Counted from the first letter of the stretch, positions 4,406 to 39,846 are shown. The stretch is DNA of 64,000 nt from Podarcis muralis (GCF_964188315.1 NC_135657.1:310001-374000), one strand, 5' to 3'. Notes: generated by a model not told the origin, from the sequence alone. A program made the numbers and translations.

Positions 4406-6875
4406 ACTGAAAAGACTCAACTCAAGAACTACCGCCCAATATCACTACTTAATGTGGATTATAAAATCTTTGCAGACATTTTGGCAAAAAGATTTAAGAG
4501 AGTGTTGATGGAGATGATTCATAAGGACCAAGCAGGCTTTCTCCCAAAAAGGCATTTATCAGACAATGTAAGAAATATAATAGACATTTTGGAATTGCTA
4601 GAGGTGAATATAAACACCAAAGCAGTGTTGATTTTTGTGGACGCGGAGAAAGCATTTGACAATATTTCTTGGAGCTTTATGAAAAAGAATCTTCATGGGA
4701 TGGGGGTAGGCCAAGGATTTGAGAATGGTATGGGTGCGATATACTCTGAACAAAAAGCGAAGCTGATTGTAAATAATGTGATAACTGATGAACTTAAGAT
4801 AGAAAAAGGAACACGACAGGGGTGCCCAATTTCCCCATTGCTCTTTATTTCGGTTCTGGAGGTGTTGCTAAATATGATTAGAAATGACCAGCAGGTTGAA
4901 GGTGTACAGGTCGGAGATAAACAGTACAAGTTAAGAGCTTTTGCAGATGACTTAGTATTGACCTTACAGGAGCCAAACTCTAGTGCGAAAAGGGTGTTGG
5001 AGATAATTCAACAATTTGGCCAGGTAGCTGGATTCAAACTGAACAAACAAAAAACTAAAGTCATAGAAAAAAATTTAACAGTTAAGGAGAAGGAGGAATT
5101 TCAAGAAGAGACAGGTTTGACAGTGGTTAAGAAGGTGAAATACCTAGGGGTTCACTTGACATCCAAAAATTTGAACTTGTATAAGGACAATTATGAAAAA
5201 TGCTGGTCAGAAATTAAAAAAGACTTAGAAATATGGTCAAATTTGAAATTATCAATGTTAGGCCGAATTGCAGTTATCAAGATGAATGTATTGCCTAAAA
5301 TGTTATTTTTATTTCAAACTTTGCAAATCCTCGACAAGATGGATTGTTTTAAGAGGTGGCAGAAAGACATATCGAAATTTGTCTGGCAGGGCAAAAAGCC
5401 CAGAATTAAATTTAAAATCCTGACAGATGCTAAAGAAAGAGGGGGATTTGCCCTGCCGGACCTAAAACTGTATTATGAAGCAGCAGCGTTCTGCTGGCTG
5501 AAAGACTGGATGCTCCTCGAGAATACAGACATTTTGGACTTGGAGGGTTTCAATAATGCATTTGGTTGGCATGCATATCTATGGTATGACAAAATTAAGC
5601 TGCATAGGGCCTTTAAGAATCATATTGTCAGAAAAGCACTGTACAATGTTTGGTTAAGATATAAAGATTTGTTAGAAAATAAAACCCCTAGATGGTTGTC
5701 ACCCTTGGAGGCCAAGGCACTCAAAAAGCCCAATATGGAGGCCAAATGGCCAAAGTATTGGGAAATTTTGGAACAAGATGGAGACAAATTGAAATTACAG
5801 AGTCATGAGAAAATGAAACTTAAAGTACGTGATTGGCTCCATTATTATCAAATAATGGAGGTTTATAAACAAGATAGGAAAGTTGGCTTCCAGGTGGAGA
5901 AATCAAAATTAGAAACTGAATTGTTAGAACCCAATACTAAGAACTTGTCAAGAATGTACAATTTGCTGCTGAAATGGAATACGCAAGATGAAACAGTTAA
6001 ATCGGCTATGATTAAGTGGGCACAGGACATCGGTCATAACATAATGTTTGCTGACTGGGAATGGTTGTGGAATACAGGTATAAAATTTACGGCCTGTAAT
6101 GCTTTAAAGGAAAATATTATGAAAATGATCTATAGGTGGTATATGACCCCAGTCAAGCTAGCAAAAATTTATCATTTGCCTGACAATAAGTGTTGGAAAT
6201 GTAAAGAAACTGAAGGTACCTTCTACCACCTTTGGTGGACGTGCCCGAAGATTAAGGCTTTCTGGGATATGATATATAATGAAATGAAAAAGGTACTTAA
6301 ATGTACTTTTCCTAAAAAATCAGAGGCCTTTCTTTTGGGCATTGTCGGCCAATTGGTGTTAAAGAAAGATAGAATTTTCTTTATGTATGCTACGACAGCA
6401 GCAAGAATACTCATCGCAAAGTACTGGAAGACACAAGATCTACCCACCCTGGAAGAGTGGCAAATGAAAGTGATGGACTATATGACACTGGCTGAGATGA
6501 CCGGCAGAATCCGCGATCAGGGGAAGGAGACAGCGGAAGAAGAGTGGAAGAAATTTAAAATTTATCTTAAGGACTATTATAAACTTGATGAATGCTAGAA
6601 TGTTGAGGTTATGAGAAAGAAAGGGTGACAGTGATATAAGATTAGACTGAAGGAAAGATTAAAAGGACAGAGACTTGACAGAAATATTTAGAAGTTGCTA
6701 AAAAACTTTGGACATTGGGATGCAGAAAGGGGAGGTATGGGGGAGTCTGTGAAATAAGGTTTAGGAAAAAAAGGTTATGAAATTATACACGTTTGTATGT
6801 CTTTTTATATGTTTGTTTTGTTTTAAAAAATACTGTAAAACCAATAAAAAAAATTTATAAAAAAAAAAAAAAAAA
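4406..6875 (+). mobile_element. 5'-truncated L1 LINE, young insertion
   Basis: 17-bp TSD AGTGATGTGAGCAGACG at 4389-4405 and 6876-6892; AATAAA at 6843-6848 then poly(A); ORF2 open from the truncation point. Confidence 0.95.
4454..6598 (+). CDS. L1 ORF2 fragment (RT domain plus C-terminal CCHC finger); frame open back to 4406, endonuclease absent
   Basis: NYRPISLLNVDYKI, DAEKAFD, GTRQGCPISP, FADD, KYLG and CWKC...HLWWTC motifs; no internal stop. Confidence 0.9.
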   Translation: MDYKIFADILAKRFKRVLMEMIHKDQAGFLPKRHLSDNVRNIIDILELLEVNINTKAVLIFVDAEKAFDNISWSFMKKNLHGMGVGQGFENGMGAIYSEQKAKLIVNNVITDELKIEKGTRQGCPISPLLFISVLEVLLNMIRNDQQVEGVQVGDKQYKLRAFADDLVLTLQEPNSSAKRVLEIIQQFGQVAGFKLNKQKTKVIEKNLTVKEKEEFQEETGLTVVKKVKYLGVHLTSKNLNLYKDNYEKCWSEIKKDLEIWSNLKLSMLGRIAVIKMNVLPKMLFLFQTLQILDKMDCFKRWQKDISKFVWQGKKPRIKFKILTDAKERGGFALPDLKLYYEAAAFCWLKDWMLLENTDILDLEGFNNAFGWHAYLWYDKIKLHRAFKNHIVRKALYNVWLRYKDLLENKTPRWLSPLEAKALKKPNMEAKWPKYWEILEQDGDKLKLQSHEKMKLKVRDWLHYYQIMEVYKQDRKVGFQVEKSKLETELLEPNTKNLSRMYNLLLKWNTQDETVKSAMIKWAQDIGHNIMFADWEWLWNTGIKFTACNALKENIMKMIYRWYMTPVKLAKIYHLPDNKCWKCKETEGTFYHLWWTCPKIKAFWDMIYNEMKKVLKCTFPKKSEAFLLGIVGQLVLKKDRIFFMYATTAARILIAKYWKTQDLPTLEEWQMKVMDYMTLAEMTGRIRDQGKETAEEEWKKFKIYLKDYYKLDEC

Positions 6876-7781: not shown

Positions 7782-9227
7782 TCACCTGATGGTGCTTTGC
7801 AGGAGGGCTGACCTGGCCACAGACTCCTTCACCCTCCTGGGCACCCCCCACCGCTGATGCAGAAGCTTCTCGCGCAGGTGGAATTCGAAGTACTGCTTTT
7901 TGTCAGTCGTAAGAAATCTTTCACATCCTGGATTTGCTCTGGGACTGTTTGTGGAAAGGTCTGTTGCTCGTGGTGAACTAGTTTGCCCACCCAACCCCTC
8001 AGGGGTGTGAGGCATAGCTTTCCCCAGGAGGCTCGTGGGACAGGGCTTCAACGCAGCCCCCTGGTGGTGATGGTGGCAGCAGCAGCAGAATGGGGAGTGA
8101 GCACAACAAGGCCGCTCAGTCAGAGGGGGGCTCTCTTGGCGGCACTCCGAGGCCTGCTCCCCCCCACCTGTGATGGAAACCAAGGCTGGGGTCAGATCCC
8201 AAAGGACCAGATCCAGCCGGGTGGGATCCCGTTTGCTGGTTGGTGGAGGCAGCTCTCTTTGGGTATCTGTGATGGCCCAGGCAGTCCGAGGGGAATCCCC
8301 GGCCGGCTGAAGTGGGACCCAGACCCCTTCCTCAGGATTCATCTTCCCTTGGGCGGCTGCGGCAAGAGGACGCTTCTCTGCAGGAGGACATCCTTGGGCA
8401 AGGGGTGCCCGGCCCCAGCTTGGCTGCTGCCTCTTGCAGCGCTGGAGCTCCACGCTAGCACACGCCTCCCCAGGCAGGCTCCGAGCCCCGTCCGGGTGGG
8501 CTGTGGCTGAGGGCAGATGGACCTGGAGGAGCTCCAAGGTGGCCAGGCTGTTCCAGGGGCCATCCCCACCCAGCTCCCGTTTCTCAGTCCCTGGAAGACC
8601 TTCCCACTGCTTCCCAGGCAGGCGTGCCAGTCCCGAGGCCAGTGGCAAAGGCTCCTGTGTCGCTTCTGGGCTCCACCAGCTTCTGCCGCCTTTGGCTGCC
8701 ATGGTCGTGGCAGAACAAGCCAGTGCTGCCGAAACACTGTGTTGCTTTGGAGAGCTGCTCCCTTTCGAAGAGGGCCTCTCTTGCTGTGGGGCTGCCTGGG
8801 CCAGAGGTGTCCCGGGAGGGGGCAGCGGCCAGCAGAGGGCTTTGCAGACCCTCTTGGGGAGGCCCCACTTGCGATGCACCGCTCTCTCCCTCAGGTGGTG
8901 CTCCAGGCACTGCCGCCTCTCCACCTTGAAAAGGGGCCTCTGGTGGTCGGTGGCAGCCTGCGGGGCTGTGCATGCCAGGAAGCCCGGCAGGGCCGGCACA
9001 GACCTCTCCAGCGAGCTGTGCACCAGGCCAGGCAAACCCCACAGCAGCTGCAGCCGCTTCCGTTGGAGGTGAGCTGTCAGCTGCTCTCGCACCTCCTGGC
9101 TGAGCAGCAGAGGGTCCAGCAATGGGGACTCCACCACTGTCCCGCTGCCCCGGCTTAGAGGGGGTGGGCAGAGGTTGGCCAGCTCGCTGGCTTGCCAGTC
9201 CTCGGGACCAGCCTCCAGTGACTGCAT
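7782..9227 (-). CDS. SPATA31/FAM205(FAM75)-family-like protein, 481 aa ORF
   Basis: Three copies of a L-x-x-H-L-x(7)-WG(L/V)P-x-x-V motif (LTAHLQRKRLQLLWGLPGLVHSSL, LEHHLRERAVHRKWGLPKRVCKAL, FEFHLREKLLHQRWGVPRRVKESV) separated by low-complexity linkers; next to ZNF512 as human SPATA31H1/C2orf16 is; in-frame stop upstream at 9255-9257. Confidence 0.65.
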   Translation of the reverse strand: MQSLEAGPEDWQASELANLCPPPLSRGSGTVVESPLLDPLLLSQEVREQLTAHLQRKRLQLLWGLPGLVHSSLERSVPALPGFLACTAPQAATDHQRPLFKVERRQCLEHHLRERAVHRKWGLPKRVCKALCWPLPPPGTPLAQAAPQQERPSSKGSSSPKQHSVSAALACSATTMAAKGGRSWWSPEATQEPLPLASGLARLPGKQWEGLPGTEKRELGGDGPWNSLATLELLQVHLPSATAHPDGARSLPGEACASVELQRCKRQQPSWGRAPLAQGCPPAEKRPLAAAAQGKMNPEEGVWVPLQPAGDSPRTAWAITDTQRELPPPTSKRDPTRLDLVLWDLTPALVSITGGGEQASECRQESPPLTERPCCAHSPFCCCCHHHHQGAALKPCPTSLLGKAMPHTPEGLGGQTSSPRATDLSTNSPRANPGCERFLTTDKKQYFEFHLREKLLHQRWGVPRRVKESVARSALLQSTIR

Positions 9228-17200: not shown

Positions 17201-18987
17201 TTCTTAAGCCGAAAGCACTCTTGAACTGAGGTGTGCTTTCCCTACTGAGGCCTCCCACCACCGGTGCCCTTCCACCGTTCGGCTTCCGGGGCAAAGTTTG
17301 CTAACCGGAACACCTACTTCCAGTTTTGTGGAGTTCGTTGCTCGAATAGTTCATTAACAGGACTGTTCGTAGACTGTACGATAATAGGACTGTACGGGAC
17401 TGTATTATTATTTCATTCTATAGTGTATAGCAAGCACATACAACAAGTCGATTGCGATCTACTGGTCGATCTGTGAGCAGATCGCAGCCTCTTGGAAGTT
17501 GGACGTCCCTGTTGTATAGAATGCATAGACTTTTAGAAGACATCTGAAGGCAGACCTGTTTAGGGAAGTTTTTAATGTTTGATGCTTTATCGTGTTTTTA
17601 ATATTCTGTTGGGAGCCACCCAGAGTGGCTGGGGAAACCCAGCCAAATGGGGGGGTATAAATGTTATTGTTATTGAAACAAAATAAAAATATATCCTTCC
17701 AGTAGCACCTTAGAGACCAACTAAGTTAGTTATTGGTATGAGCTTTTGTGTGCATGCACACTTCTTTAGTTATTGTTATTGTAGAAGAGAGAGAACAATT
17801 ATAACAGTTGAAAATCAAAAGGTGAAAACAAAACTACAAAATAGGCACGTAGTAGGAGTAGTTCTGCTGTATATCTCATAAAGGAATGCCAAATCACATA
17901 AAAAGTGCCAGGAGAGTCTAGTTCTTGAGAGACCAGCACTGTTGAGGGCAGGAGTTCACAGGTTCAGTCCCCAGTGAGATCTCCAGGAAGAGGATCCCTG
18001 CCCCAAACCCTGGAGAAGCCACTGCAGTGCAGGCAGTGCTGCTAGAAGGACCTGATGGTTTGGCTCAGTGAAAGGCAGCTTCCTAGGCTCCCAAGAGGAT
18101 TTCAGGGTTATCATGAAAGGTTATCGGAAAAGGGTCATTAAGAGACTCAGCCAGCAGAAGCCTTTTTAACCAAACTTCCTATCTTTAGATGGGACCCAAT
18201 TCATTTGAAGTCAGCATTTCCCACGAGCAGCCTCTGAATGGACCTGACAGGCCTGGGATTGGCAGGGAGAAGCTGCATCCTGTGATTCCTTATGCTCTCT
18301 GCCTTTGTGTCCTGGAGTGACATGCAAATTAATAGCTCCTATCAAAGAATAAGGGACGCAAGTGGCGCTGTGATCTAAACCACTGAGCCTAGGGCTTGCC
18401 AATCAGGAGGTCGTTGGTTCGAATCCCCGTGAAGGGGTGCGCTCCCGTTGCTCTGTCCCATCTCCTGCCAACCTGGCAGTTCAAAAGCACGACAAAGTGC
18501 AAGTAGATGAATAGCAACCACTATTGGAAACAGCGTTTCCGTGCGCTGCTCTGGTTTCGCCAGAAGCGGCTTAGTCATGCTGGCCACATAACCTGGAAAA
18601 ACTGTCTGCGGACAAACGTTGGCTCCCTCGGCTAGTAAAGCAAGATGAGCTCCCCGTTAGAGGGAAGGGTGCTGGTTTAAGACGCTTTCCGGCTTATAGG
18701 TAAGGGGGCTGAGGTTGGACCTGAACGTCACCTGGTACACTCTGAGCTTATGGCAGGCTGATGTCTGCATGGCATGACCCTTGGCATCCCTTCCACCTCT
18801 TCCAGACTATGCCTGCCCCAGACCCCCCGGCTCTCTGGGCTTCTCCGGAGGAGGAAGGTGCCAGGCTCCAGAGTGCGGCCGCGAGAGAGGGGCAATCCCC
18901 AGGCGCCCCCTCCTCACCTTCCCTCGCCGCCTCCTCCTCCTCCTCCCGGGCAGGGGTCTTGGCGGCGGCGGGCTTCGCCCCCTTCAT
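11217..18987 (-). CDS. ZNF512: Zinc finger protein 512
   Basis: GT-AG exons with consistent phases: 17005-17094, 16580-16663, 16081-16205, 15263-15349, 14682-14777, 14289-14456, 13330-13533, 12473-12574, 12073-12135, 11690-11788, 11217-11522 (stop). Peptides [57 protein letters not shown] and [17 protein letters not shown] match human ZNF512. Start exon 18918-18987 is tentative (phase-compatible only). Confidence 0.93.
13555..14075 (+). mobile_element. CR1 LINE 3' fragment in a ZNF512 intron
   Basis: Degraded ORF2 end [18 protein letters not shown] followed by the CR1 3' UTR. Confidence 0.75.
14830..15040 (+). mobile_element. CR1 LINE 3' end
   Basis: GGGTTGGACTAGATGGCCCTTGGG...CCAACTCTATGATTCTGTG terminal octamer-repeat tail. 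Confidence 0.75.
17157..17375. mobile_element. Tigger/pogo-like MITE, right TIR partly deleted
   Basis: TA followed by CAGTGGTACCTCAGTCTATGAAC; remnant GTTCGTAGACTG at the right end; same TIR family as 53794-54030. Confidence 0.55.
17431..17511. mobile_element. Tiny hAT-like MITE (81 bp)
   Basis: 8-bp TSD GTGTATAG / TTGTATAG (7/8); imperfect TIR CAAGCACATACAAC vs GTTGGACGTCCCTG. Confidence 0.5.
17535..17675 (+). mobile_element. L2 LINE 3' tip
   Basis: Matches the 3' end of the large L2 at 35301-38620, including the GGCTGGGGAAACCCAGCC stem-loop. Confidence 0.8.
17680..17770 (-). mobile_element. Penelope-like pseudo-LTR fragment with a degenerate hammerhead core
   Basis: Close match to the repeats at 32410-33016; core reads CTAAAGA...CAAAAGCTC. 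Confidence 0.8.
18353..18650 (+). mobile_element. Sauria SINE (Squam1), near full length
   Basis: tRNA-like head (GTGGCGCTGTG... / GGTTCGAATCC box B) plus a body matching the copy at 41560-41942. Confidence 0.85.
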
Positions 18988-30830: not shown

Positions 30831-33800
30831 GAAAGGTCAGACCTCGCCCCCGGAAAAGGGCATCTTCGGAGATGAGGGCACCCCCCCCCCCCCAAGTCTC
30901 TGGAGCAGAAGCAAGCGAGGAAGGTCTGGTCGATGCTCCTCAGAAAGGAGCTGGAAAACGATCCAGGACCTCCCCTGCGAGGACAGCTTACACCGTTTAG
31001 GGCTCTTTGGGTTGGGGGGGAAATGGGATTTAAAATGCAGGGAGAAGTTCATAGAGTTGGAAGAGACCACAAGGGCCATCATTCATGAAATGATGGAGGG
31101 TGTCGAGAGAGAAAGAGAGGATCTCTTGGTCACCCAGGGAAATGTATTAGCCAGACATTCAGGCCAAATAAAATCAAATGTTCCTTTGCACAGTGTGTAC
31201 TTGTGGAACTCATTGCCACAAGAGAATGGTGGTAATGACAATTCTGGTAACTTTAAAAACAGTTTGACATGCCTGGAGGATGAAGAGGGCAGTTACATGG
31301 GACCTGCATTCTAGAGGCAGGAAACTGTTTGCTGGGGTGGGGTGAGGGGGGGTGCCAGTCTGCCTTGAGCTGCTCCAGCCAGGCTGCCCTTCGGACCTGA
31401 CAAGCACTTGGCTACTCCAGCCACGTAGCTGACCCTGTGGCCAAAGGACTGAACCCCCAGGTGTCTCACCTTGCTGTGCCCATCTCTCCACAGGCCCATG
31501 GACCCCTGGTGCTGCCTGCGCCCCCCCTGGCGGTGGGGATGGGGCTGTGCCTGGCTGAGCTTTGCTCTGCTGTGCCTGGCCACACTCTCCTTGCTCTGCC
31601 TGCAGTCTGGGCTCGTGCTGCGCTTGGCTCACCATGGGGCAGGAGGACCCCCAACCTCTGCAGCTGCTGCTTTCTCCCGGAGCCTCCAGCCGCACTCCAG
31701 AAGCAACCGGACTCTTCAGCGGCTCCTGGGTGCTGGGCCTGCCAGCCTTGCCTCTGCCCAGCAGGCTCCGTTGTGGCACTCCTTCCTCTCTGGCCTGTGG
31801 AGATTCTGGCATCGCCTTGCAGAGGGGCTGGGCAGGTCCTGGCAGGGCTCCAGGACGACTGTCCAGTTGCAGCCCCTGCCCTGGGCTGCCTGGCAGAAGC
31901 AGCTCTCTTCAGGGGTGCTGGGCCCCCGCCTTCAGCAAGTCTTCCAGAACTACCAAGCCATGAATAAGTACCGGGTGCCCCCGGGGGCTGTGCAACGCCG
32001 AGGGAACCCCCATGCCGCTGGGACAGAGCTCTTGTGCCAGCTCCAGAGCCGCGTGGCAGTGACCACGCTCCTGGGGGATGAGGGGCCCTTTGCAGACCCA
32101 GAGTGGAGGGGGCTGCTGCCCCGCAGGAGCCTGAGGCAGGAGCTGGGCCCCCTGGGGAAGTGTGCCGTCGTCAGCTCTGCTGGCTCCATGTTGGGCTCCG
32201 GACTAGGCAAGGAGATTGGTGAGTGCTGGTTGGGGGGGGGAGCATCCCAGCGGGTGGCTCTGGCACAGCCTCCAGGGGGTGAGGGGATGCCTTGCCCTTC
32301 AGGAGAGGGTGCCATGCGTCCTGGCACTCGGGAGCATGAAGCAACCTGCCTCTCCTGTTTATGGGAGTCACCCAGCTATAGTTGGGTTTCAGAGCAAAAG
32401 AAGAGTGTGCAGGATCAGGTCAAAACAAAAAAAATTCCTTCCAGTAGCACCTTAAAGACCAACTAAGTTAGTTCTTGGTATGAGCTTTCGTGTGCATGCA
32501 CACTTCTTCAGATCAAGAAGATATCAGTCTGTACCTGTGCAAGTTTCTTGGTGAGGTTGATGGACTTCCATTTCATGCGGCTCAATGTGGTGCCTTCCAT
32601 AGTTCCAGTTACAGATGGGTAGCCGTGTTGGTCTGCCATAGTCAAAACAAAAAAAATTCCTTCCAGTAGCACCTTAAAGACCAACTAAGTTAGTTCTTGG
32701 TATGAGCTTTCGTGTGCATGCACACTTCTTCAGATGAAGAAGTGTGAAGAAGTGTATCAGTACAGACTGATATCTTCTTGATCTGAAGAAGTGTGCATGC
32801 ACACGAAAGCTCATACCAAGAACTAACTTAGTTGGTCTTTAAGGTGCTACTGGAAGGAATTTTTTTTGTTTTGACCTGATCCTGCACATTCTGAAGAAGT
32901 GTGCATGCACACGAAAGCTCATACCAAGAACTAACTTAGTTGGTCTTTAAGGTGCTACTGGAAGGAATTTTTTTTGTTTTGACTATGGCAGACCAACACG
33001 GCTACCCATCTGTAACAGGATCAGGTCAGTGAGAGCCAGTGTGGTGTAGTGGTTAAGAGCGGTAGTCATGTAATCTGGGTAACCGGGTTCGCGTCTCTGC
33101 TCCTCCACATGCAGCTGCTGGGTGACCTTGGGCCAGTCACATTTCTTTGAAGTCTCTCAGCCTCACTCACCTCACAGAGTGTTTGTTGTGGGGGAGGAAG
33201 GGAAAGGAGATTGTTAGCCGCTTTGAGACTCCTGAAGGGGAGTGAAAGGCGGGATATCAAATCCAAACTCTTCTTCTTCTTCTTCAGTGGCCCATCTAGG
33301 CCTGCATCCTGTTCACAGTGGCCAACCAGGTGCCTGTTATGGGAAGCTCACAAACAGGATCTGAGAACAGGATCCCTGAATCTCTCTCCTCCTGAGTCCT
33401 GCTGGGATTCAAAGCATGGCTGCCTCAGACTGTGGAGGCAAAGCAGAGCCCTTGTGGCTACTAGCCATTGATAGGAGTTGTTGCCTTCATATCCCACCTC
33501 GTGTACCTGGCTCTCTCCTCTCCATTTCAAGTAGTTTAGCAGCAGAGTGGCAGCGGCAGCAGGAGGTTCTCAGCTCCCCTTGGGCCCTGCAGGGGAGTCC
33601 TGGTTGCACCTTTTGTGTAAAATTCCATCTGAGTTCTCACAGGAGGAGCTCATTTCACATCCTAGAAATGTTAGCAGAGCATTTCTGTTGGCAAAGTCTC
33701 AGGAGGAAACTCCTAACAATACTTTACAGTTACACAGTGATAAAATAATAACAATACTGAAATAATGGGTAATTATCTGGTCTTCATGGGCCATCTTGTT

Positions 33801-36800
33801 CCCTGATGATGCAGCTGCCCAGGGACAGGTCTTGAGCAGCCCCCCCCCCCCAGCATGGCTGGCTGCCCCTCTCCCCAGGAAGGGAGCTGCAGGTCTAAGA
33901 AGGGTCCTGGTTGGGTAGGGGTCTGCCTGCTCTCCCTTCCCCTGGCCCTCATATTCCTCCTCCTCTTCCTCCTCCTCTTAGACGCCCATGATGCTGTTCT
34001 TCGTTTCAACGGAGCCCCAACCACTGGCTATGAGCAGGACGTGGGCACCAAAACTACCATCCGCCTCGTGAATTCCCAGGTGGGCAATGAAGGGGGGGGC
34101 TGGGAGAGGACAGCAGGGTGTGGATATGGGTTTGGGCCAAATAAAGGGAAGAGCCAATTGGGGGCAGCCTCGTGGGGCTGCAGTGTGTGGGGTTATGAGC
34201 TTTGGGCTGCTCTGTAGCCACAATCCCTGCCCTCCAGCTCTAGGGTGTGCTGAAGCCCACTGCCATAAAGAGGCTTGAGGCACCTTCAAAACTAGCAAAT
34301 GTTATTAATTATGAGATGAACTTTTGTGAACTCAGGCCCGTGTCTTCAGGTGAGAGTTGAATGGCCGTGAGATGCAAAAATCACAGCCAGTGATCATCAG
34401 AGCTTCCATAAAAAGACACACCTTCAGCCGCTTACCAGCAGATTGGTGAATAATGCGCTCATCTCGGCAGTGAACACCTGCCCTGGGTCAGGGAACCGTT
34501 CGCAAGGAACAGTTGTTGACAGCACAGGATGCTGCTGGCACTGGTAACACAGTAGGATCAAGAGCTGTTGTCTCAATGTTACCCAAGAGTGATGGCGCTG
34601 AAGTTACTGCCTTCGCCAGCTCCAGTGTGAGTTTGTGCTCTGGCTGAGCGGCACCTGTGGACTGCTGGGGCTTTGGACGTGGCATCAAGGGGCCTTGCCC
34701 ACAGAAGTCACCCCCATGCTGCTCCTCTGCAGGTGGAAGGTGGGTGGGTGCGCACACACACTCGGGTGCAATATGAGCAGCAGTAGGTGCCAAGCAGCTC
34801 AGAGAAAAAAGGGATAATTTCTCTCAGGGGAGCAACAAGAGGGAAGGATGGCCTCTCTGAAAGTGCAGAGAAAGGTGGGGCTGCCCTCTGCCTGCCAGCC
34901 TGCCCTTCCCCGCTAGGCTTCAGGTGTTTATGGGCTCTGGGCAAGAAACCCACATGTCTAACAAAGCTGCACGTAAGGGCCAGCAACCCTGGGGGCCTCT
35001 CCCTGCCCTCCCCTCTCCGCCTCTTCTTGCATCTGAACAACTTTCTGGGATCCTGGAGTCAGGCCCGTTCTGACCCGATCCGCCCCCCTCTACCCCACAG
35101 CTGATGGCTTCTCCTGAGCAGCACTTTCTGGATGACCAACTCTATGCGCAGGGAGCCTTGGTTGCATGGGACCCAGCCCCTTTCCCAGGGGACCTGCAGG
35201 AGGTGAGACCCTCTCTCTGCCTTGTGCTTGGGGCAGGACAAGATCCGTGGGTGCCAGGGGAGGGCAGGGGCATCCTCTGTCAATTACATTCCCAGGACTT
35301 GATAATAATAATAATAATTTATTATTTGTACCCTGCCCATCTGGCTGGGTTTCCCCAGCCACTCTGGGCGGCTTCCATAGAAACCAAAAAACACTAAAAT
35401 ATCATACATTAAAAACTTCCCTGAACAGGGCTGCCTTCAGATGTCTTCTGAATGTCAGGTAGTTGTTTATCGCTTTGACATCTGATGGGAGGGCGTTCCA
35501 CAGGGCGGGCGCCACTACCGTGAAGGCCCTCTGCCTGGTTCCCTGTAGCTTTGCTTCTCGCACTGAGGGAACCGCCAGAAGGCCCTCGGCGCTGGACCTC
35601 AGCGTCCAGGCAGAACGATGGGGGTGGAGACGCTCCTTCAGGTATACTGGACCGAGGCCGTTTAGGGCTTTAAAGGTCAGCACCAACACTTTGAATTGTG
35701 CTCGGAAACATACTGGGAGCCAATGTAGGTCTTTCAAGACTGGTGTTATGTGGTCTCGGTGGCCGCCCCCAGTCACTAGTCTAGCTGCCGCATTCTGGAT
35801 TAGCTGTAGTTTCTGAGTCACCTTCAAAGGTAGCCCCACATAGAGCGCATTGCAGTAGTCCAAGCGGGAGATAACTAGAGCATGCACCACTCTGGCGAGA
35901 CAGTCCGCGGGCAGGTAGGGTCTCAGCCTGAGTACCAGGTGGAGTTGGTAGACAGCTGCCCTGGATACAGAATTGACCTGCACCTCCATGGACAGCTGTG
36001 AGTCCAAAATGACTCCCAGGCTACGCACCTGGTCCTTCAGGGGCACAGTTACCCTATTCAGGACCAGGGAGTCCTCCACACCAGCCCGCCCCCTGTCCCC
36101 CAAAAACAGTACTTCTGTCTTGTCAGGATTCAACTTCAATCCATTAGCCGCCATCCATCCTCCAACCGCCTCCAGGCACTCACACAGGACCTTCACCGCC
36201 TTCACTGGTTCTGATTTGAAAGAGAGGTAGAGCTGGGTATCATCTGCATACTGATGGACACCCAGTCCAAACCCCTTGATGATCTCTCCCAGCGGCTTCA
36301 TATAGATGTTAAAAAGCATGGGGGAGAGGACGGAACCCTGAGGCACCCCACAAGTGAGAGCCCAAGGGTCTGAACACTCACCCCCCACCACCACTTTCTG
36401 AACAAGGCCCAGGAGGAAGGAGCAAAACCACTGTATAACAGTGCCCCCAGCTCCCAACCCCTCTAGACGGTCCAGAAGGATGTTATGGTCGATTGTATCA
36501 AAGGCCGCTGAGAGATCCAGCAGAACTAGGAAACAGCTCTCACCTTTGTCCCTAGCCCGCCAGAGATCATCGACCAGCGCAACCAAGGCAGTTTCAGTCC
36601 CATGATGAGGCCTGAACCCCCATTGGAAGGGATCCAAATGGTCCGCATCCTCCAGGTGTGCCTGGAGTTGTTCAGCAACCACACGCTCAATCACCTTGCC
36701 CAAGAATGGAAGATTTGAGACTGGGCGATAGTTGGCCATACTGGCCGGGTCTAAAGATGGTTTTTTAAGAAGCGGTTTAATGACCGCCTCTTTCAGCGGA

Positions 36801-39800
36801 TCTGGGAATGTTCCCTCACAGAGGGAAGCATTCACCACCCCACGAAGCCCATCGCCCAGTCCTTCCCGGCTAGCTTTTATAAGCCAGGATGGGCAAGGAT
36901 CCAGGAGACAGGTGGTTGGTTTCACTCGTCCAAGCAGCCTGTCCACATCCTCGGAGGTAACAGATTGGAATTGATCCCACTCAACTTGACTAGACAGAAC
37001 TCTAGCACTCTCCCGCCCCGGCCCTGCTCCCACGGTGGAGTCTACTTCTTCCCGAATCTGAGCGATTTTATCTGCAAAAAACTTTGCAAAATCATTGCAG
37101 GAGAACATGTGGCCCGTACTGGGCCCCGATGTTGCAGGTGGTTCCGCTAAATTGTGAACCACCTGAAAAAGTCTCCTGCTGCTGTTTTCTGCAGATGCAA
37201 TAGAGGCGGTGAAGAAATTCTTCGCCGTCGCTATCGCCACTTGGTAGGCTCGACGTTGAGCTCTAACCTGTGTCCGGTCAGATTCGGAGTGAGTTTTCTG
37301 CCACCGACGCTCTAGCCGTCTCAGCGATTGTTTCATCATCCTCAGCTCTGAAGAAAACCACGGGGCTGTCCGGGCTCCATGCATTGGACAGGGCACTTCG
37401 GAGCCAGACAGTCGATAGCCCTGGTTAACTCCACATTCCAGCAGGCCACCAGGGAATCGGCTGAAAGGCCATCAACATGGGATAAAGCATCCCCTACCAC
37501 TCTCTGGAAACCATTTGGATCCATTAAGTGGCAGGGGCGGACCATCCGAATTGGTCCCACCTCCCTGCAGAGGGGAAGGGTTGCAGAGAAGTCCAGTTGC
37601 ACCAGGAAGTGATCTGACCATGGCACTTCTTTTGTTTCGCTTTTAGTTAATGTCAGATCACCAACATCCGTAGAGGTAAACACCAAGTCTAAGGCATGTC
37701 CGCGGCTATGGGTTGGGCCAAACTTATTCAGGGACAGCCCCATGGAGGCCATGCTTTCCACGAAGTCCCGAGCGGCCCCTTGTAAGGTCGTGTCGGCATG
37801 GATGTTAAAATCCCCTAGGACAACCAAACTAGGTGTGTCCAGGAGGACATCTGCCACGACCTGAAGCAGCTCGGGCAGGGAATCCTTGGTGCAGCGGGGA
37901 GGTCAGTACACCAAAGGAATCCTGTACTGCCCCTATTGCCCAACTTCCAGAACATGCACTCAGAAAACTGGGTCTTCCCAGTAGGACGCCTGATGCAAAC
38001 TAATGACTTCCTAAAAATCACTGCAACCCCCCCTCCCCGCCCACATGACCTGGGTTGCTGTGCAAAAGAGAAACCTGGTGGGCAAGCGGCAGCAAGGACA
38101 GGCCCATCTGCTTCCTCCAACCAGGTCTCTGTCACACATGCCAGGTCAAATCCTCCATCCACAATCAGGTCGTGGATGGCAGTGGTTTTATTCATCATTG
38201 ACCTGGCATTACACAGCAACACCTTCAGGTCATGTGGGTTTCCCCTGTTGATTCCAGTATCCATCCGGTCAAGGCCAGACCCGGAGGCAGGGATAGTCTT
38301 CAAACAACGACTAAACCTGCCTCCTCGGTAATGACATGGTCTGGTCTTAGCGTAACTCCGCCTCCTGCCCATGATCACGAGATCGGATGTCCCAGTGCTT
38401 CCCCCCCTGTGGAACTTGTCCCAGCCATCGTGTTGGCTGGGGCCCCACTCCCAGGCAGCCCTGATCCCGCCCCTTAAAAACAAAACACAAACTATACAGA
38501 ACCAATAAAACAACAAAAAACAAAAACAGAACAATTATACTAAAATTAATCCCCAACCAAATATCCATCCCACCCACCCACCCCCAACAAAGAAAAAAAG
38601 AAAAAAAAGAAATACAAATTTAAATTGCCACCGACTGCTTGAGGACATTTTAAAACACATTAACCACTTGGAACAGGGAAGCAATTGCAGAACACTTCCC
38701 AGCTTCCCCAAAAGTTTGTTCCAAATAAGGGCCTGGGCGCCGCCCCCTGGGCCAGTTGGAGCAGGCCCTGGAAGGGAGCAGGCCCTGCAGTCCTCACCCA
38801 GCCGATGGTCCGAGGCTTCCCTGCAGCAGGAGTCCCTTTATAGCTGGGAGAGAGGGCCAGGGCCACACCCCCTGGGCCAGTTGGAAGAGGCCCTGGAAGG
38901 GAGCAGGCCCTGCAATCCTCACCCAGCTACTCTGGCGCCTTCTGGCGGCTGTCAGGGGAACTCCCTGCAATTTCCCTCTGGCTTAAAGAATGAATTCCAC
39001 AGCTAGGAGGAAATCAACCTTTGCACCAGAGATGGTGGGGTGGGGTGGGGTGGGGTGAAGCTCTGCTCTGCTCCACACTCCCCTTTCTCCCTCTCCCGGC
39101 AGTGGTTCGAGGCCCCCGACTACCCCATCTTCAGACCCTTCCGTGCGATGCGCTCCCAGAGGCCCCAGCAGCTCTTCCACCTGCTGCACCCGCGAGTGCA
39201 GTGGCAGCTCTGGGGGCTGGTGCAGGAAGGGGCACCGGAGGCAGTACAGCGGAACCCCCCCTCCTCAGGGCTGCTTGGTAAGGAAGGCACTCCCCTCCCT
39301 TGTGTCTCCCAAGGGTGCTCCCTTCTGAGTGGCCAAGAGGCACCCTTCCTCTGCCTCCCTTTTTACTGAGAGCTCCTCTCAGCCCTGCTTTCCTTCCTCT
39401 CACTGGTTGAGGGTGCGGGCGGCTGATGTTACTCCAGGGCATGAGGTGCGAGACACTTTCCACATTCTCAGGGGGACTCATCAAGTGCCAACTTTCCAGC
39501 CCTGGTGAAAGAAGTTTCCTCCTGCCCCCCCCCCCCGCCGCCCTGCAGGTCCTTCTTTGCAGCGGCCCCACCTCCATCTCTCCCTCTTCCAGGGACAGTG
39601 CTGATGCTGTCGCTCTGTGACCTGGTCCATGTCTACGAGTTCCTGCCCTCACAGCGCCAGTCTTCACGGTGCCACTACTACCAGGACTTTGTGGATGAGG
39701 CCTGCACGCTGGGTGCCTACCACCCGCTGCTCTTCGAGAAGGACCTGGTTCGCCGCATGAACCAAGGCTCACCGGCTGACTTGGCCCGGCTGGGGCGGGT

Positions 39801-39846
39801 GACGCTGCCTGGCTTCCGGGCTCTGAATTGCACCCTGGAGGAGTAG
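30329..39846 (+). CDS. Beta-galactoside alpha-2,6-sialyltransferase (ST6GAL-family paralog), about 456 aa
   Basis: Exons 30329-30345 (MRRRR, in frame), 31494-32218, 33982-34079, 35101-35202, 39103-39277, 39593-39846. Type II TM segment; sialylmotif L (CAVVSSAGS...[13 protein letters not shown]...[14 protein letters not shown]), S (PPSSGLLG...[10 protein letters not shown]), motif 3 (CHYY), VS (HPLLFEK); exon layout as ST6GAL1/2. Confidence 0.93.
32482..32511 (-). ncRNA. Minimal type I hammerhead ribozyme core, copy A
   Basis: CTGAAGA-A-GTGTGCATGCACAC-GAAA-GCTC on minus; stem I possible as in copy C. Confidence 0.65.
32704..32733 (-). ncRNA. Minimal hammerhead core, copy B
   Basis: Identical core; only 2 bp of own stem I. 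Confidence 0.55.
32783..32812 (+). ncRNA. Minimal type I hammerhead ribozyme core, copy C
   Basis: CUGAAGA, extra A, stem II GUGUG/CACAC, GAAA, palindromic stem III AGCU, CUC cleavage triplet; stem I UUCUUG-AU pairs with AU-(AC bulge)-CAAGAA. Confidence 0.65.
32891..32920 (+). ncRNA. Minimal hammerhead core, copy D
   Basis: Identical core 108 nt after copy C; own stem I 5' strand truncated. Confidence 0.55.
33031..33285 (+). mobile_element. Squam3-type tRNA-derived SINE, full length
   Basis: GAGAGCCAGTGTGGTGTAGTGGTTAAG (box A), GGGTTCG (box B), GGGTGACCTTGGGCCAGTCAC core, (TTC)n tail. Confidence 0.85.
33290..33480 (-). mobile_element. CR1-family 3' fragment
   Basis: Same family as 2090-2390. 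Confidence 0.6.
35301..38620 (-). mobile_element. Near full-length L2-clade LINE with two frameshifts, in an ST6GAL-like intron
   Basis: APE domain split over ORFs 37815-38534 and 37342-37857 (LLCNARS, CVTETWL, LGDFNIH, SDH); RT ORF 35402-37396 ([37 protein letters not shown]); 3' stem-loop and (TTA)n tail. Confidence 0.93.
38744..38927. repeat. About 60-bp imperfect direct repeat x2 inside a possible MITE
   Basis: CCCCTGGGCCAGTTGGA...GGAAGGGAGCAGGCCCTGCA(G/A)TCCTCACCCAGC at about 38744 and 38869. Confidence 0.6.

Follow-up and report, generated by a model that had tools for sequence, protein, structure and literature searches.

Penelope-like elements (PLEs) carry minimal hammerhead ribozymes, and Cervera & de la Pena (2014; PMC4209133) described four marks by which the genuine ones are recognized, namely a base between positions 9 and 10.1, a G10.1-C11.1 pair, a palindromic 15.2-16.2 and a helix III without a loop. 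According to the same study, such minimal motifs must work as dimers and are only weakly active in vitro, and close hammerhead pairs on opposite strands had been noted. For Poseidon_Ac (PAc), a PLE of the lizard Anolis carolinensis, Frangieh et al. (2024; PMC11167929) reported that reverse transcription starts internally at two sites, which bound an optional tail of ~34 nt (~+85 to +119, with C3 of the hammerhead at -6), that the PAc protein cuts and extends both DNA strands, and that the PAc hammerhead cleaves only in the presence of the PLE protein, with no cleaved ends in RNA-seq. In PLE insertions more generally, 5'-truncation, partial tandems and a neighbouring truncated copy in inverted orientation are typical, as is a tail of 30-40 bp that is often found at one end only (Craig et al. 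2021, PMC8557442; for the general architecture see also Evgen'ev & Arkhipova 2005, as cited there). Here, we describe a cluster of four minimal hammerheads in an intron of a sialyltransferase-like gene of Podarcis muralis, located in a window of 64,000 nt (GCF_964188315.1 NC_135657.1:310001-374000) within which all lizard positions below are counted.

Our analysis indicates that the cluster is very probably a single, recent composite PLE insertion, made solely of short hammerhead-bearing leader units and 43 PLE codons. Pattern searches recovered the 30-nt core CTGAAGAAGTGTGCATGCACACGAAAGCTC four times without any deviation, twice on the minus strand (32482-32511 and 32704-32733) and twice on the plus strand (32783-32812 and 32891-32920), as an earlier note made from the DNA sequence had claimed; the number expected in shuffled sequence is 0. 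All four cores belong to a single repeat, for which reason we count them as one motif and not as four independent ones. Each core reads C3 U4 G5 A6 A7 G8 A9, an unpaired A, helix II, G12 A13 A14, A15.1-G-C-U16.1 and C17, and the conserved catalytic core (CUGAAGA / GAAA / A-GC-U-C) is present in all four cluster copies. Helix II is formed by GUGUG-CAUG-CACAC and closed by G10.1-C11.1, with one unpaired A following A9, while helix III lacks a loop and its AGCU is palindromic (15.2-16.2), as is needed for dimer formation. Judged by its sequence, the motif is a minimal PLE-type hammerhead; every sequence hallmark of the class defined in PMC4209133 is present, which upholds the earlier assignment to the minimal Penelope type I hammerheads. 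The claim that the palindromic AGCU stem III calls for dimerization likewise has in silico support, in that the enforced helix III pairs between the two plus-strand copies are all canonical. The extra A after A9 was correctly recognized as part of the class, but it is a conserved class feature (PMC4209133) and not a mere tolerated variant, as the note had assumed.

Searches with the Rfam models Hammerhead_1, Hammerhead_3, HH9, HH10 and Hammerhead_II gave no match at the gathering score or at E<=10, even with a 71-nt slice. The curated hammerhead models of Rfam contain a helix III hairpin, and this miss is therefore expected. The same database returned microRNA-like matches on both strands of 32679-32837 (MIR1222, MIR821, mir-466, mir-1 and others), with E-values down to 2e-13 and all below the gathering score. 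We do not regard these as microRNA genes, but as generic hairpin artefacts that arise because the region is a perfect inverted repeat.

The cluster is a 593-bp block (32423-33015) that lies between two copies of a 13-bp target-site duplication (TSD), with an element 3' end at each edge, a tail at the right edge only, and no runs of N in the region. All copies share a body of 93 nt that extends from C3 to GTTTTGAC. Units A and C, and a fifth and older copy elsewhere in the window (unit E, described below), stop at this point, while units B and D continue for 33 nt (TATGGCAGACC...CTGTAAC), which constitute the tail, and the distance from C3 is accordingly 93 nt for one fixed 3' end and 126 nt for the other, 33 nt further on. 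Units A, D and E all start at C3. At the left edge, the TSD CAGGATCAGGTCA (32410-32422, with an exact second copy at 33016-33028) overlaps by its last 4 nt the GAC end of unit A, which occupies 93 nt on the minus strand (32419-32511) from C3 at 32511 to the first 3' end, without a tail, and has its core at 32482-32511 with predicted cleavage after 32482. Adjoining it on the same strand is PLE coding sequence (32512-32607; native codons ~12-43) that prolongs unit B past its tail, the part nearest to A (32512-32521) serving as the stem I 5' strand of hammerhead A. The AC-rich, 33-nt tail of unit B (32608-32640, minus strand) includes the ATG of an open reading frame (ORF) at 32639-32637 and is identical to the tail of unit D (32984-33016), and unit B itself comprises the next 93 nt (32641-32733, minus strand; core 32704-32733, predicted cleavage after 32704).

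The central junction (32734-32759) is composed of short snap-back and slipped pieces (AT-GAAGAAGTGTG, AAGAAGTGT and ATCAGT), and is followed on the plus strand by 23 nt of the ORF copied from upstream of A (32760-32782), which provide the stem I 5' strand UUCUUGAU for hammerhead C. Unit C (32783-32875, plus strand) is 93 nt long and tailless, with its core at 32783-32812 and C17 at 32812. An inverted copy of the left TSD together with 8 nt of left flank (32872-32892, plus strand, corresponding to 32402-32422) carries one mismatch (32889 versus 32405) and ends in TCT, which it shares with the first bases of unit D as a microhomology. Unit D (32891-32983, plus strand; core 32891-32920, C17 at 32920) consists of 93 nt from C3 without a stem I 5' strand, and the 33-nt tail that follows (32984-33016, plus strand) ends in GTAAC, the second canonical 3' end, where it abuts the right TSD (33016-33028), which matches the left copy at the opposite edge of the cluster. 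Units A, B, C and D and both tails are 100% identical, with mismatches confined to the junctions. In the repeat map, A and B form a direct repeat at a distance of 222 nt and C and D one at 108 nt, the latter being the spacing given by the earlier note. Its claim that antisense arms pair with C and D also stands, but the length of 126-128 bp was an underestimate, the inverted arms A':C (32402-32534 versus 32760-32892) and B':D (32604-32734 versus 32890-33020) spanning 133 and 131 nt, respectively, with 1 mismatch each; the other complementary arms are B':C (102 nt) and A':D (94 nt, perfect).

The repeat map shows 5'-truncation, a partial tandem, an adjacent inverted copy and a tail at one end, and the tandem and inverted layout is a standard by-product of PLE insertion. 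The 3' ends in the cluster also match the two internal start sites of reverse transcription known from PAc, lying 93 and 126 nt from C3 compared with ~+85 and +119 for a C3 at -6. In the sequence of events that we propose, the PLE protein would have cut both DNA strands and cDNA would have been primed from both ends, with A made from the left and D from the right; such cutting and extension of both strands explains why a 3' end is found at each edge of the insertion. On reaching the 5' end of its template, the left cDNA would then have switched to a second RNA, giving rise to B, before snapping back on itself and copying A, the TSD and ~8 nt of flank to produce C, after which the snapped-back cDNA would have joined D through the TCT microhomology. 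The inverted copy of TSD and flank at 32872-32892 indicates that C and its flank were copied from A and its flank by snap-back at the DNA level. We conclude that the cluster is genuine and well preserved, and that it is of a known kind and represents no new mechanism.

The stem I strand of hammerheads A and C can be traced to one of the junctions. Starting at core B, the lizard sequence runs unbroken and native through the tail and a further 96 nt that are coding, ending in ...GATATCTTCTTGA; there it joins unit A at the 5' end of the latter, the fusion point being TTCTTGA|TCTGAAG (PLE codons ...D-I-F-L joined to the unit 5' end). Because the sequence is native through tail and coding region before this fusion, the A/C-type stem I strand lies at the junction itself, as had been proposed. 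In A and C, this strand can pair with AU-ac-CAAGAA in a helix I of 2+6 bp, while B has one mismatch and D and E have no such strand. It is also borne out that C alone on the plus strand possesses a stem I 5' strand, as D begins at C3. An alternative junction at GTAAC|TGGAAC was rejected, since alignment with a turtle copy (see below) shows contiguity through the tail and a break at TTCTTGA|TCTGAAG.

The minus-strand ORF that includes this coding sequence (32639 to 32508, 43 codons) starts at the beginning of the tail of B and stops in the UGA of core A, so that its stop codon, inside a hammerhead core, is a product of the junction. When the 43-aa translation was used in a phmmer search of the full library, seven related proteins (P0002-P0008) were found with E-values of 7e-10 to 8e-4. 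In these proteins the matching segment is N-terminal, and their sequences run on as ...QTDIIFLSKCKQ... / ...QTDIIFLSKCKQMDIIPKGLK. We had also considered that the ORF might encode the C-terminus of a PLE protein, which was rejected because both phmmer and the turtle alignment place it at the N-terminus. The top phmmer match (P0001), an unrelated repetitive protein without an aligned stretch, was discarded, and the locus encoding P0004 (L003) was uninformative, having no hammerhead nearby. Pfam gave no match for a 58-aa ORF, nor for three turtle ORFs in the region where the reverse transcriptase would be expected.

One of the related proteins, P0006, is encoded in green turtle contig KB530911.1 (locus L001), where the ORF (6001-6393) is preceded by a homologous leader and tail and followed, 2.2 kb downstream on the same strand, by an ORF for a GIY-YIG endonuclease (8209-8565; 25.7 bits); a reverse transcriptase domain was not detected by Pfam in this degraded copy. 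Beyond the GIY-YIG ORF, the turtle element continues with a non-coding stretch, a hammerhead (CTGAAGAAGTGGG...CCCAC), a leader and a tail, the last of which stops at ~8897 against unrelated DNA. In the DNA alignment, the whole length of the lizard unit finds its homologue in the hammerhead, leader, tail and ORF start of the turtle element, and the turtle 3' end falls at the same alignment column as the end of the D tail. Helix II differs between the two species by one compensatory pair change (GUGGG...CCCAC in the turtle, GUGUG...CACAC in the lizard). Together with the homologues of the 43-aa ORF, this turtle arrangement of hammerhead, leader and tail with a GIY-YIG ORF supports the Penelope origin suggested by the earlier note, and on the strength of this homology the cluster elements are Penelope-derived.

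Two further observations concern the turtle locus. At 8725-8780, a TATAAAAA box lies ~40 nt upstream of C3 of the hammerhead and would place the start of transcription near C3; with such a start, and cDNA running from an internal start site of reverse transcription to the 5' end of the RNA, the beginning of A, D and E at C3 could be explained. In addition, an inverted, hammerhead-bearing leader (5636-5728, minus strand) is found right upstream of a 5'-truncated forward element (5915-6393, plus strand), a head-to-head arrangement as in the lizard.

A BLAST search of the window with the unit found only the four cluster copies and unit E. This older, solo mini-element (17676-17769, minus strand; core 17740-17769) is 91-93% identical to the cluster units, begins exactly at C3, lacks the tail and is bordered on both sides by the direct repeat CAATAACAATAAC in AT-rich DNA. 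Its catalytic core is no longer conserved, as G5 and G12, the latter located in a CpG, have both mutated to A, and from the loss of these two bases we conclude that there is no constraint after insertion.

The host gene is recognized by Glyco_transf_29 segments that Pfam places on the plus strand at 33855-34070 and 39505-39846. The corresponding sialyltransferase exon extends over 33981-34079 on this strand, with further Glyco_transf_29 exon sequence within 39505-39846, and reading of the sequence puts the end of the upstream exon at 32218, a GT donor at 32219 and an acceptor AG at 33979-33980. The cluster, flanked by these sites, lies within a sialyltransferase intron of ~1.76 kb, of which it makes up one third at a distance of 200 nt from the 5' splice site; both the intronic location and the identity of the plus strand as the pre-mRNA strand, indicated by the Glyco_transf_29 exons and the splice sites, had been claimed and are borne out.

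Several other features of the gene and its introns were noted. The large first coding exon of the sialyltransferase-like gene (31471-32218, plus strand) has no Pfam match at E<=0.1, terminates in the start of the sialyl-L motif (...CAVVSSAGS...GKEI) and seems to encode an unusually long and divergent N-terminal stem region. Right after the right TSD, at 33029-33280 (plus strand), is a repeat that by eye resembles a tRNA-derived squamate short interspersed element (GAGAGCCAGTGTGGTGTAGTGG...) with a CTT microsatellite at its end; no tRNA match was obtained from Rfam in this repeat at E<=1. A downstream intron holds a long interspersed element, a non-LTR (long terminal repeat) retrotransposon unrelated to the Penelope units (35402-37857, minus strand), with a 664-aa ORF containing RVT_1 (127.8 bits) and a neighbouring ORF with an Exo_endo_phos_2 endonuclease domain.

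Whether the intact hammerheads act on the host transcript depends on how the RNA folds. The earlier note had proposed a cleave-or-hairpin switch, in which cleavage of the sialyltransferase pre-mRNA after 32920, by a double hammerhead formed in cis from C and D, competes with hairpins made with A and B. This proposal has several features on its side. The cores are intact and their AGCU has the palindromic form that dimerization requires, the insertion sits close to the splice donor on the pre-mRNA strand, and C has an 8-bp stem I strand able to pair with the sequence after C17 of D, which in a double hammerhead would direct cleavage mainly to the point after 32920, as predicted; when the cis C/D double hammerhead is enforced in silico, its pairs are all canonical and the fold is nested. 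However, the hairpins prevail in the nearest-neighbour model. The plus-strand cluster has a minimum free energy (MFE) of -406.9 kcal/mol (ViennaRNA), and in the MFE fold two nested, perfect 95-bp helices (32418-32512/32890-32984 and 32641-32735/32781-32875) bury all four cores, which agrees with the suggestion that C and D can be sequestered by the antisense units A and B. When these are included, C is already completely base-paired before transcription reaches D, and in every transcript folded from the intron start (eight ends, 32800 to 33200) 30 of the 30 nucleotides of core C are paired to an antisense copy, so that the hairpin wins at every length tested. During transcription A and B emerge ahead of C and D and pair with them in perfect duplexes of at least 95 bp, so that neither folding nor cutting of the hammerheads is expected.

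The model does not favour the double hammerhead in the absence of A and B either. In a construct with C and D only, the enforced structure reaches -47.5 kcal/mol compared with an MFE of -65.5 kcal/mol, a gap of 18 kcal/mol; pairing between the stem II palindromes is preferred, and the probability of the hammerhead pairs stays at <1e-4. Similarly, two units cofolded in trans form a stem-II/stem-II duplex and not a double hammerhead. The switch is further disfavoured by published work on related elements, where minimal hammerhead dimers of PLEs were weakly active in vitro (PMC4209133) or, in Anolis, dependent on the PLE protein, with lizard RNA-seq free of cleaved ends (PMC11167929), and by the layout of the locus, which is that of an insertion by-product (PMC8557442), and the decay of the old copy E at its catalytic bases. 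We accordingly consider a regulatory switch extremely unlikely, and the folding model makes it most likely that the locus is an inert intronic inverted repeat that yields at most generic double-stranded RNA. Less credible still is a variant in which the accidental fusion of PLE codons 40-43 to a mini-element made a strong helix I, C/D (or antisense A/B) became an unusually competent cis double hammerhead, and opening of the hairpins, for instance by ADAR editing or helicases, led to cleavage of the pre-mRNA or to a 108- or 222-nt RNA. If this were true, the locus would modify the output of its host gene by means of a ribozyme, and would be young and possibly polymorphic in this role.

Two other explanations concern the nature of the cluster itself. 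The head-to-tail hammerhead pair on each strand recalls a non-LTR retrozyme, whose 222-nt (minus strand) or 108-nt (plus strand) interval would be excised, circularized and propagated as a small circular RNA; the consensus of reptile retrozymes averages 176 bp and retrozymes stem from the pseudo-long terminal repeats (pLTRs) of PLEs (bioRxiv 10.64898/2026.07.22.740005), and both A and C have a good stem I. With only two units per strand, no stem I in D, and periods that differ between the strands (222 versus 108 nt) and are built from different junctions, one of which includes copied flanking DNA, we find this very unlikely. A partial assembly artefact, in which the assembler expanded or mis-joined what was originally a simpler pair of head-to-head mini-elements, would account for units that are 100% identical, and tandem and inverted PLE structures are reported to trouble whole-genome shotgun assembly (PMC8557442). 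Yet every junction is unique and interpretable, whether as TSD, as flank copy with one mismatch, as ORF extension or as slipped centre, and the region is free of N runs, which makes an artefact of this kind highly unlikely, ranking just after the retrozyme and ahead of the switch.

A single composite PLE insertion that is inert in its host intron remains our preferred explanation, and several points speak against parts of it. No ORF for a reverse transcriptase of the Penelope-like family was found within the 64-kb window, so that the PLE link rests on the 43-aa match and one turtle locus. The order of template jumps and snap-back is read from junction sequences only, and the identity of the four copies could reflect an assembly problem, as known for PLE arrays. 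Moreover, TTCTTGAT may also be the native stem I strand of full-length lizard copies, and the 222-nt B-A repeat may be a recurrent deletion derivative. Lastly, the folding model takes no account of tertiary contacts, helicases, proteins or ADAR editing, and the hairpins could be opened by any one of these.

With these reservations, the locus offers a clean and very young example of what the biochemistry of Anolis PLEs predicts, displaying priming from both DNA ends, two fixed internal start sites of reverse transcription and products whose 5' ends lie at C3, and in addition a visible snap-back by which the target site was copied. Intact hammerhead clusters in squamate introns are best seen as routine debris of Penelope-like retrotransposition, and a host-regulatory reading needs RNA evidence. 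If the insertion is polymorphic, it would provide a convenient natural test of whether splicing or editing is affected when an intron carries a long and perfect inverted repeat at 200 nt from the splice donor.

In comparison with the minimal hammerheads of PLEs (PMC4209133), a class reported in reptiles, the lizard motif has the same core (C3-A9 / G12-A14 / A15.1...U16.1-C17), the unpaired base between A9 and G10.1, the G10.1-C11.1 pair, the loopless helix III and the palindromic 15.2-16.2 (GC), and its copies are likewise both dispersed and close together on opposite strands. It differs in having a helix II of 5 bp with a CAUG loop, which is itself a 14-nt palindrome, and, in A and C, a longer predicted helix I (2+6 bp with a 2-nt bulge) that derives from a coding-sequence junction. 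Poseidon_Ac shares with the lizard element the location of the hammerhead at the boundary of pLTR and ORF and the two 3' ends at matching distances from the hammerhead, with an optional tail. It belongs to a different family, however, with the core CUGAGGA, another stem II and an ORF start inside stem II, whereas in the lizard the ATG of the ORF is located where the tail begins, 95 nt after C3, and the leader is closed in all frames.

Like PLE insertions in general (PMC8557442), the cluster combines strong 5'-truncation, partial tandems, an inverted 5'-truncated copy, a tail in the range of 30-40 bp and a hammerhead in the pLTR, but it contains no full-length body, and target site and flank are present in it as an inverted copy. 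Finally, the non-LTR retrozymes of animals (Cervera & de la Pena 2020, PMC7229834; Li et al. 2026 preprint) resemble the cluster in their short head-to-tail repeats, their type-I hammerheads that need to dimerize and their origin from PLE pLTRs, while the periods in the lizard are unequal and built by junctions, with two units only, one of which has no stem I.

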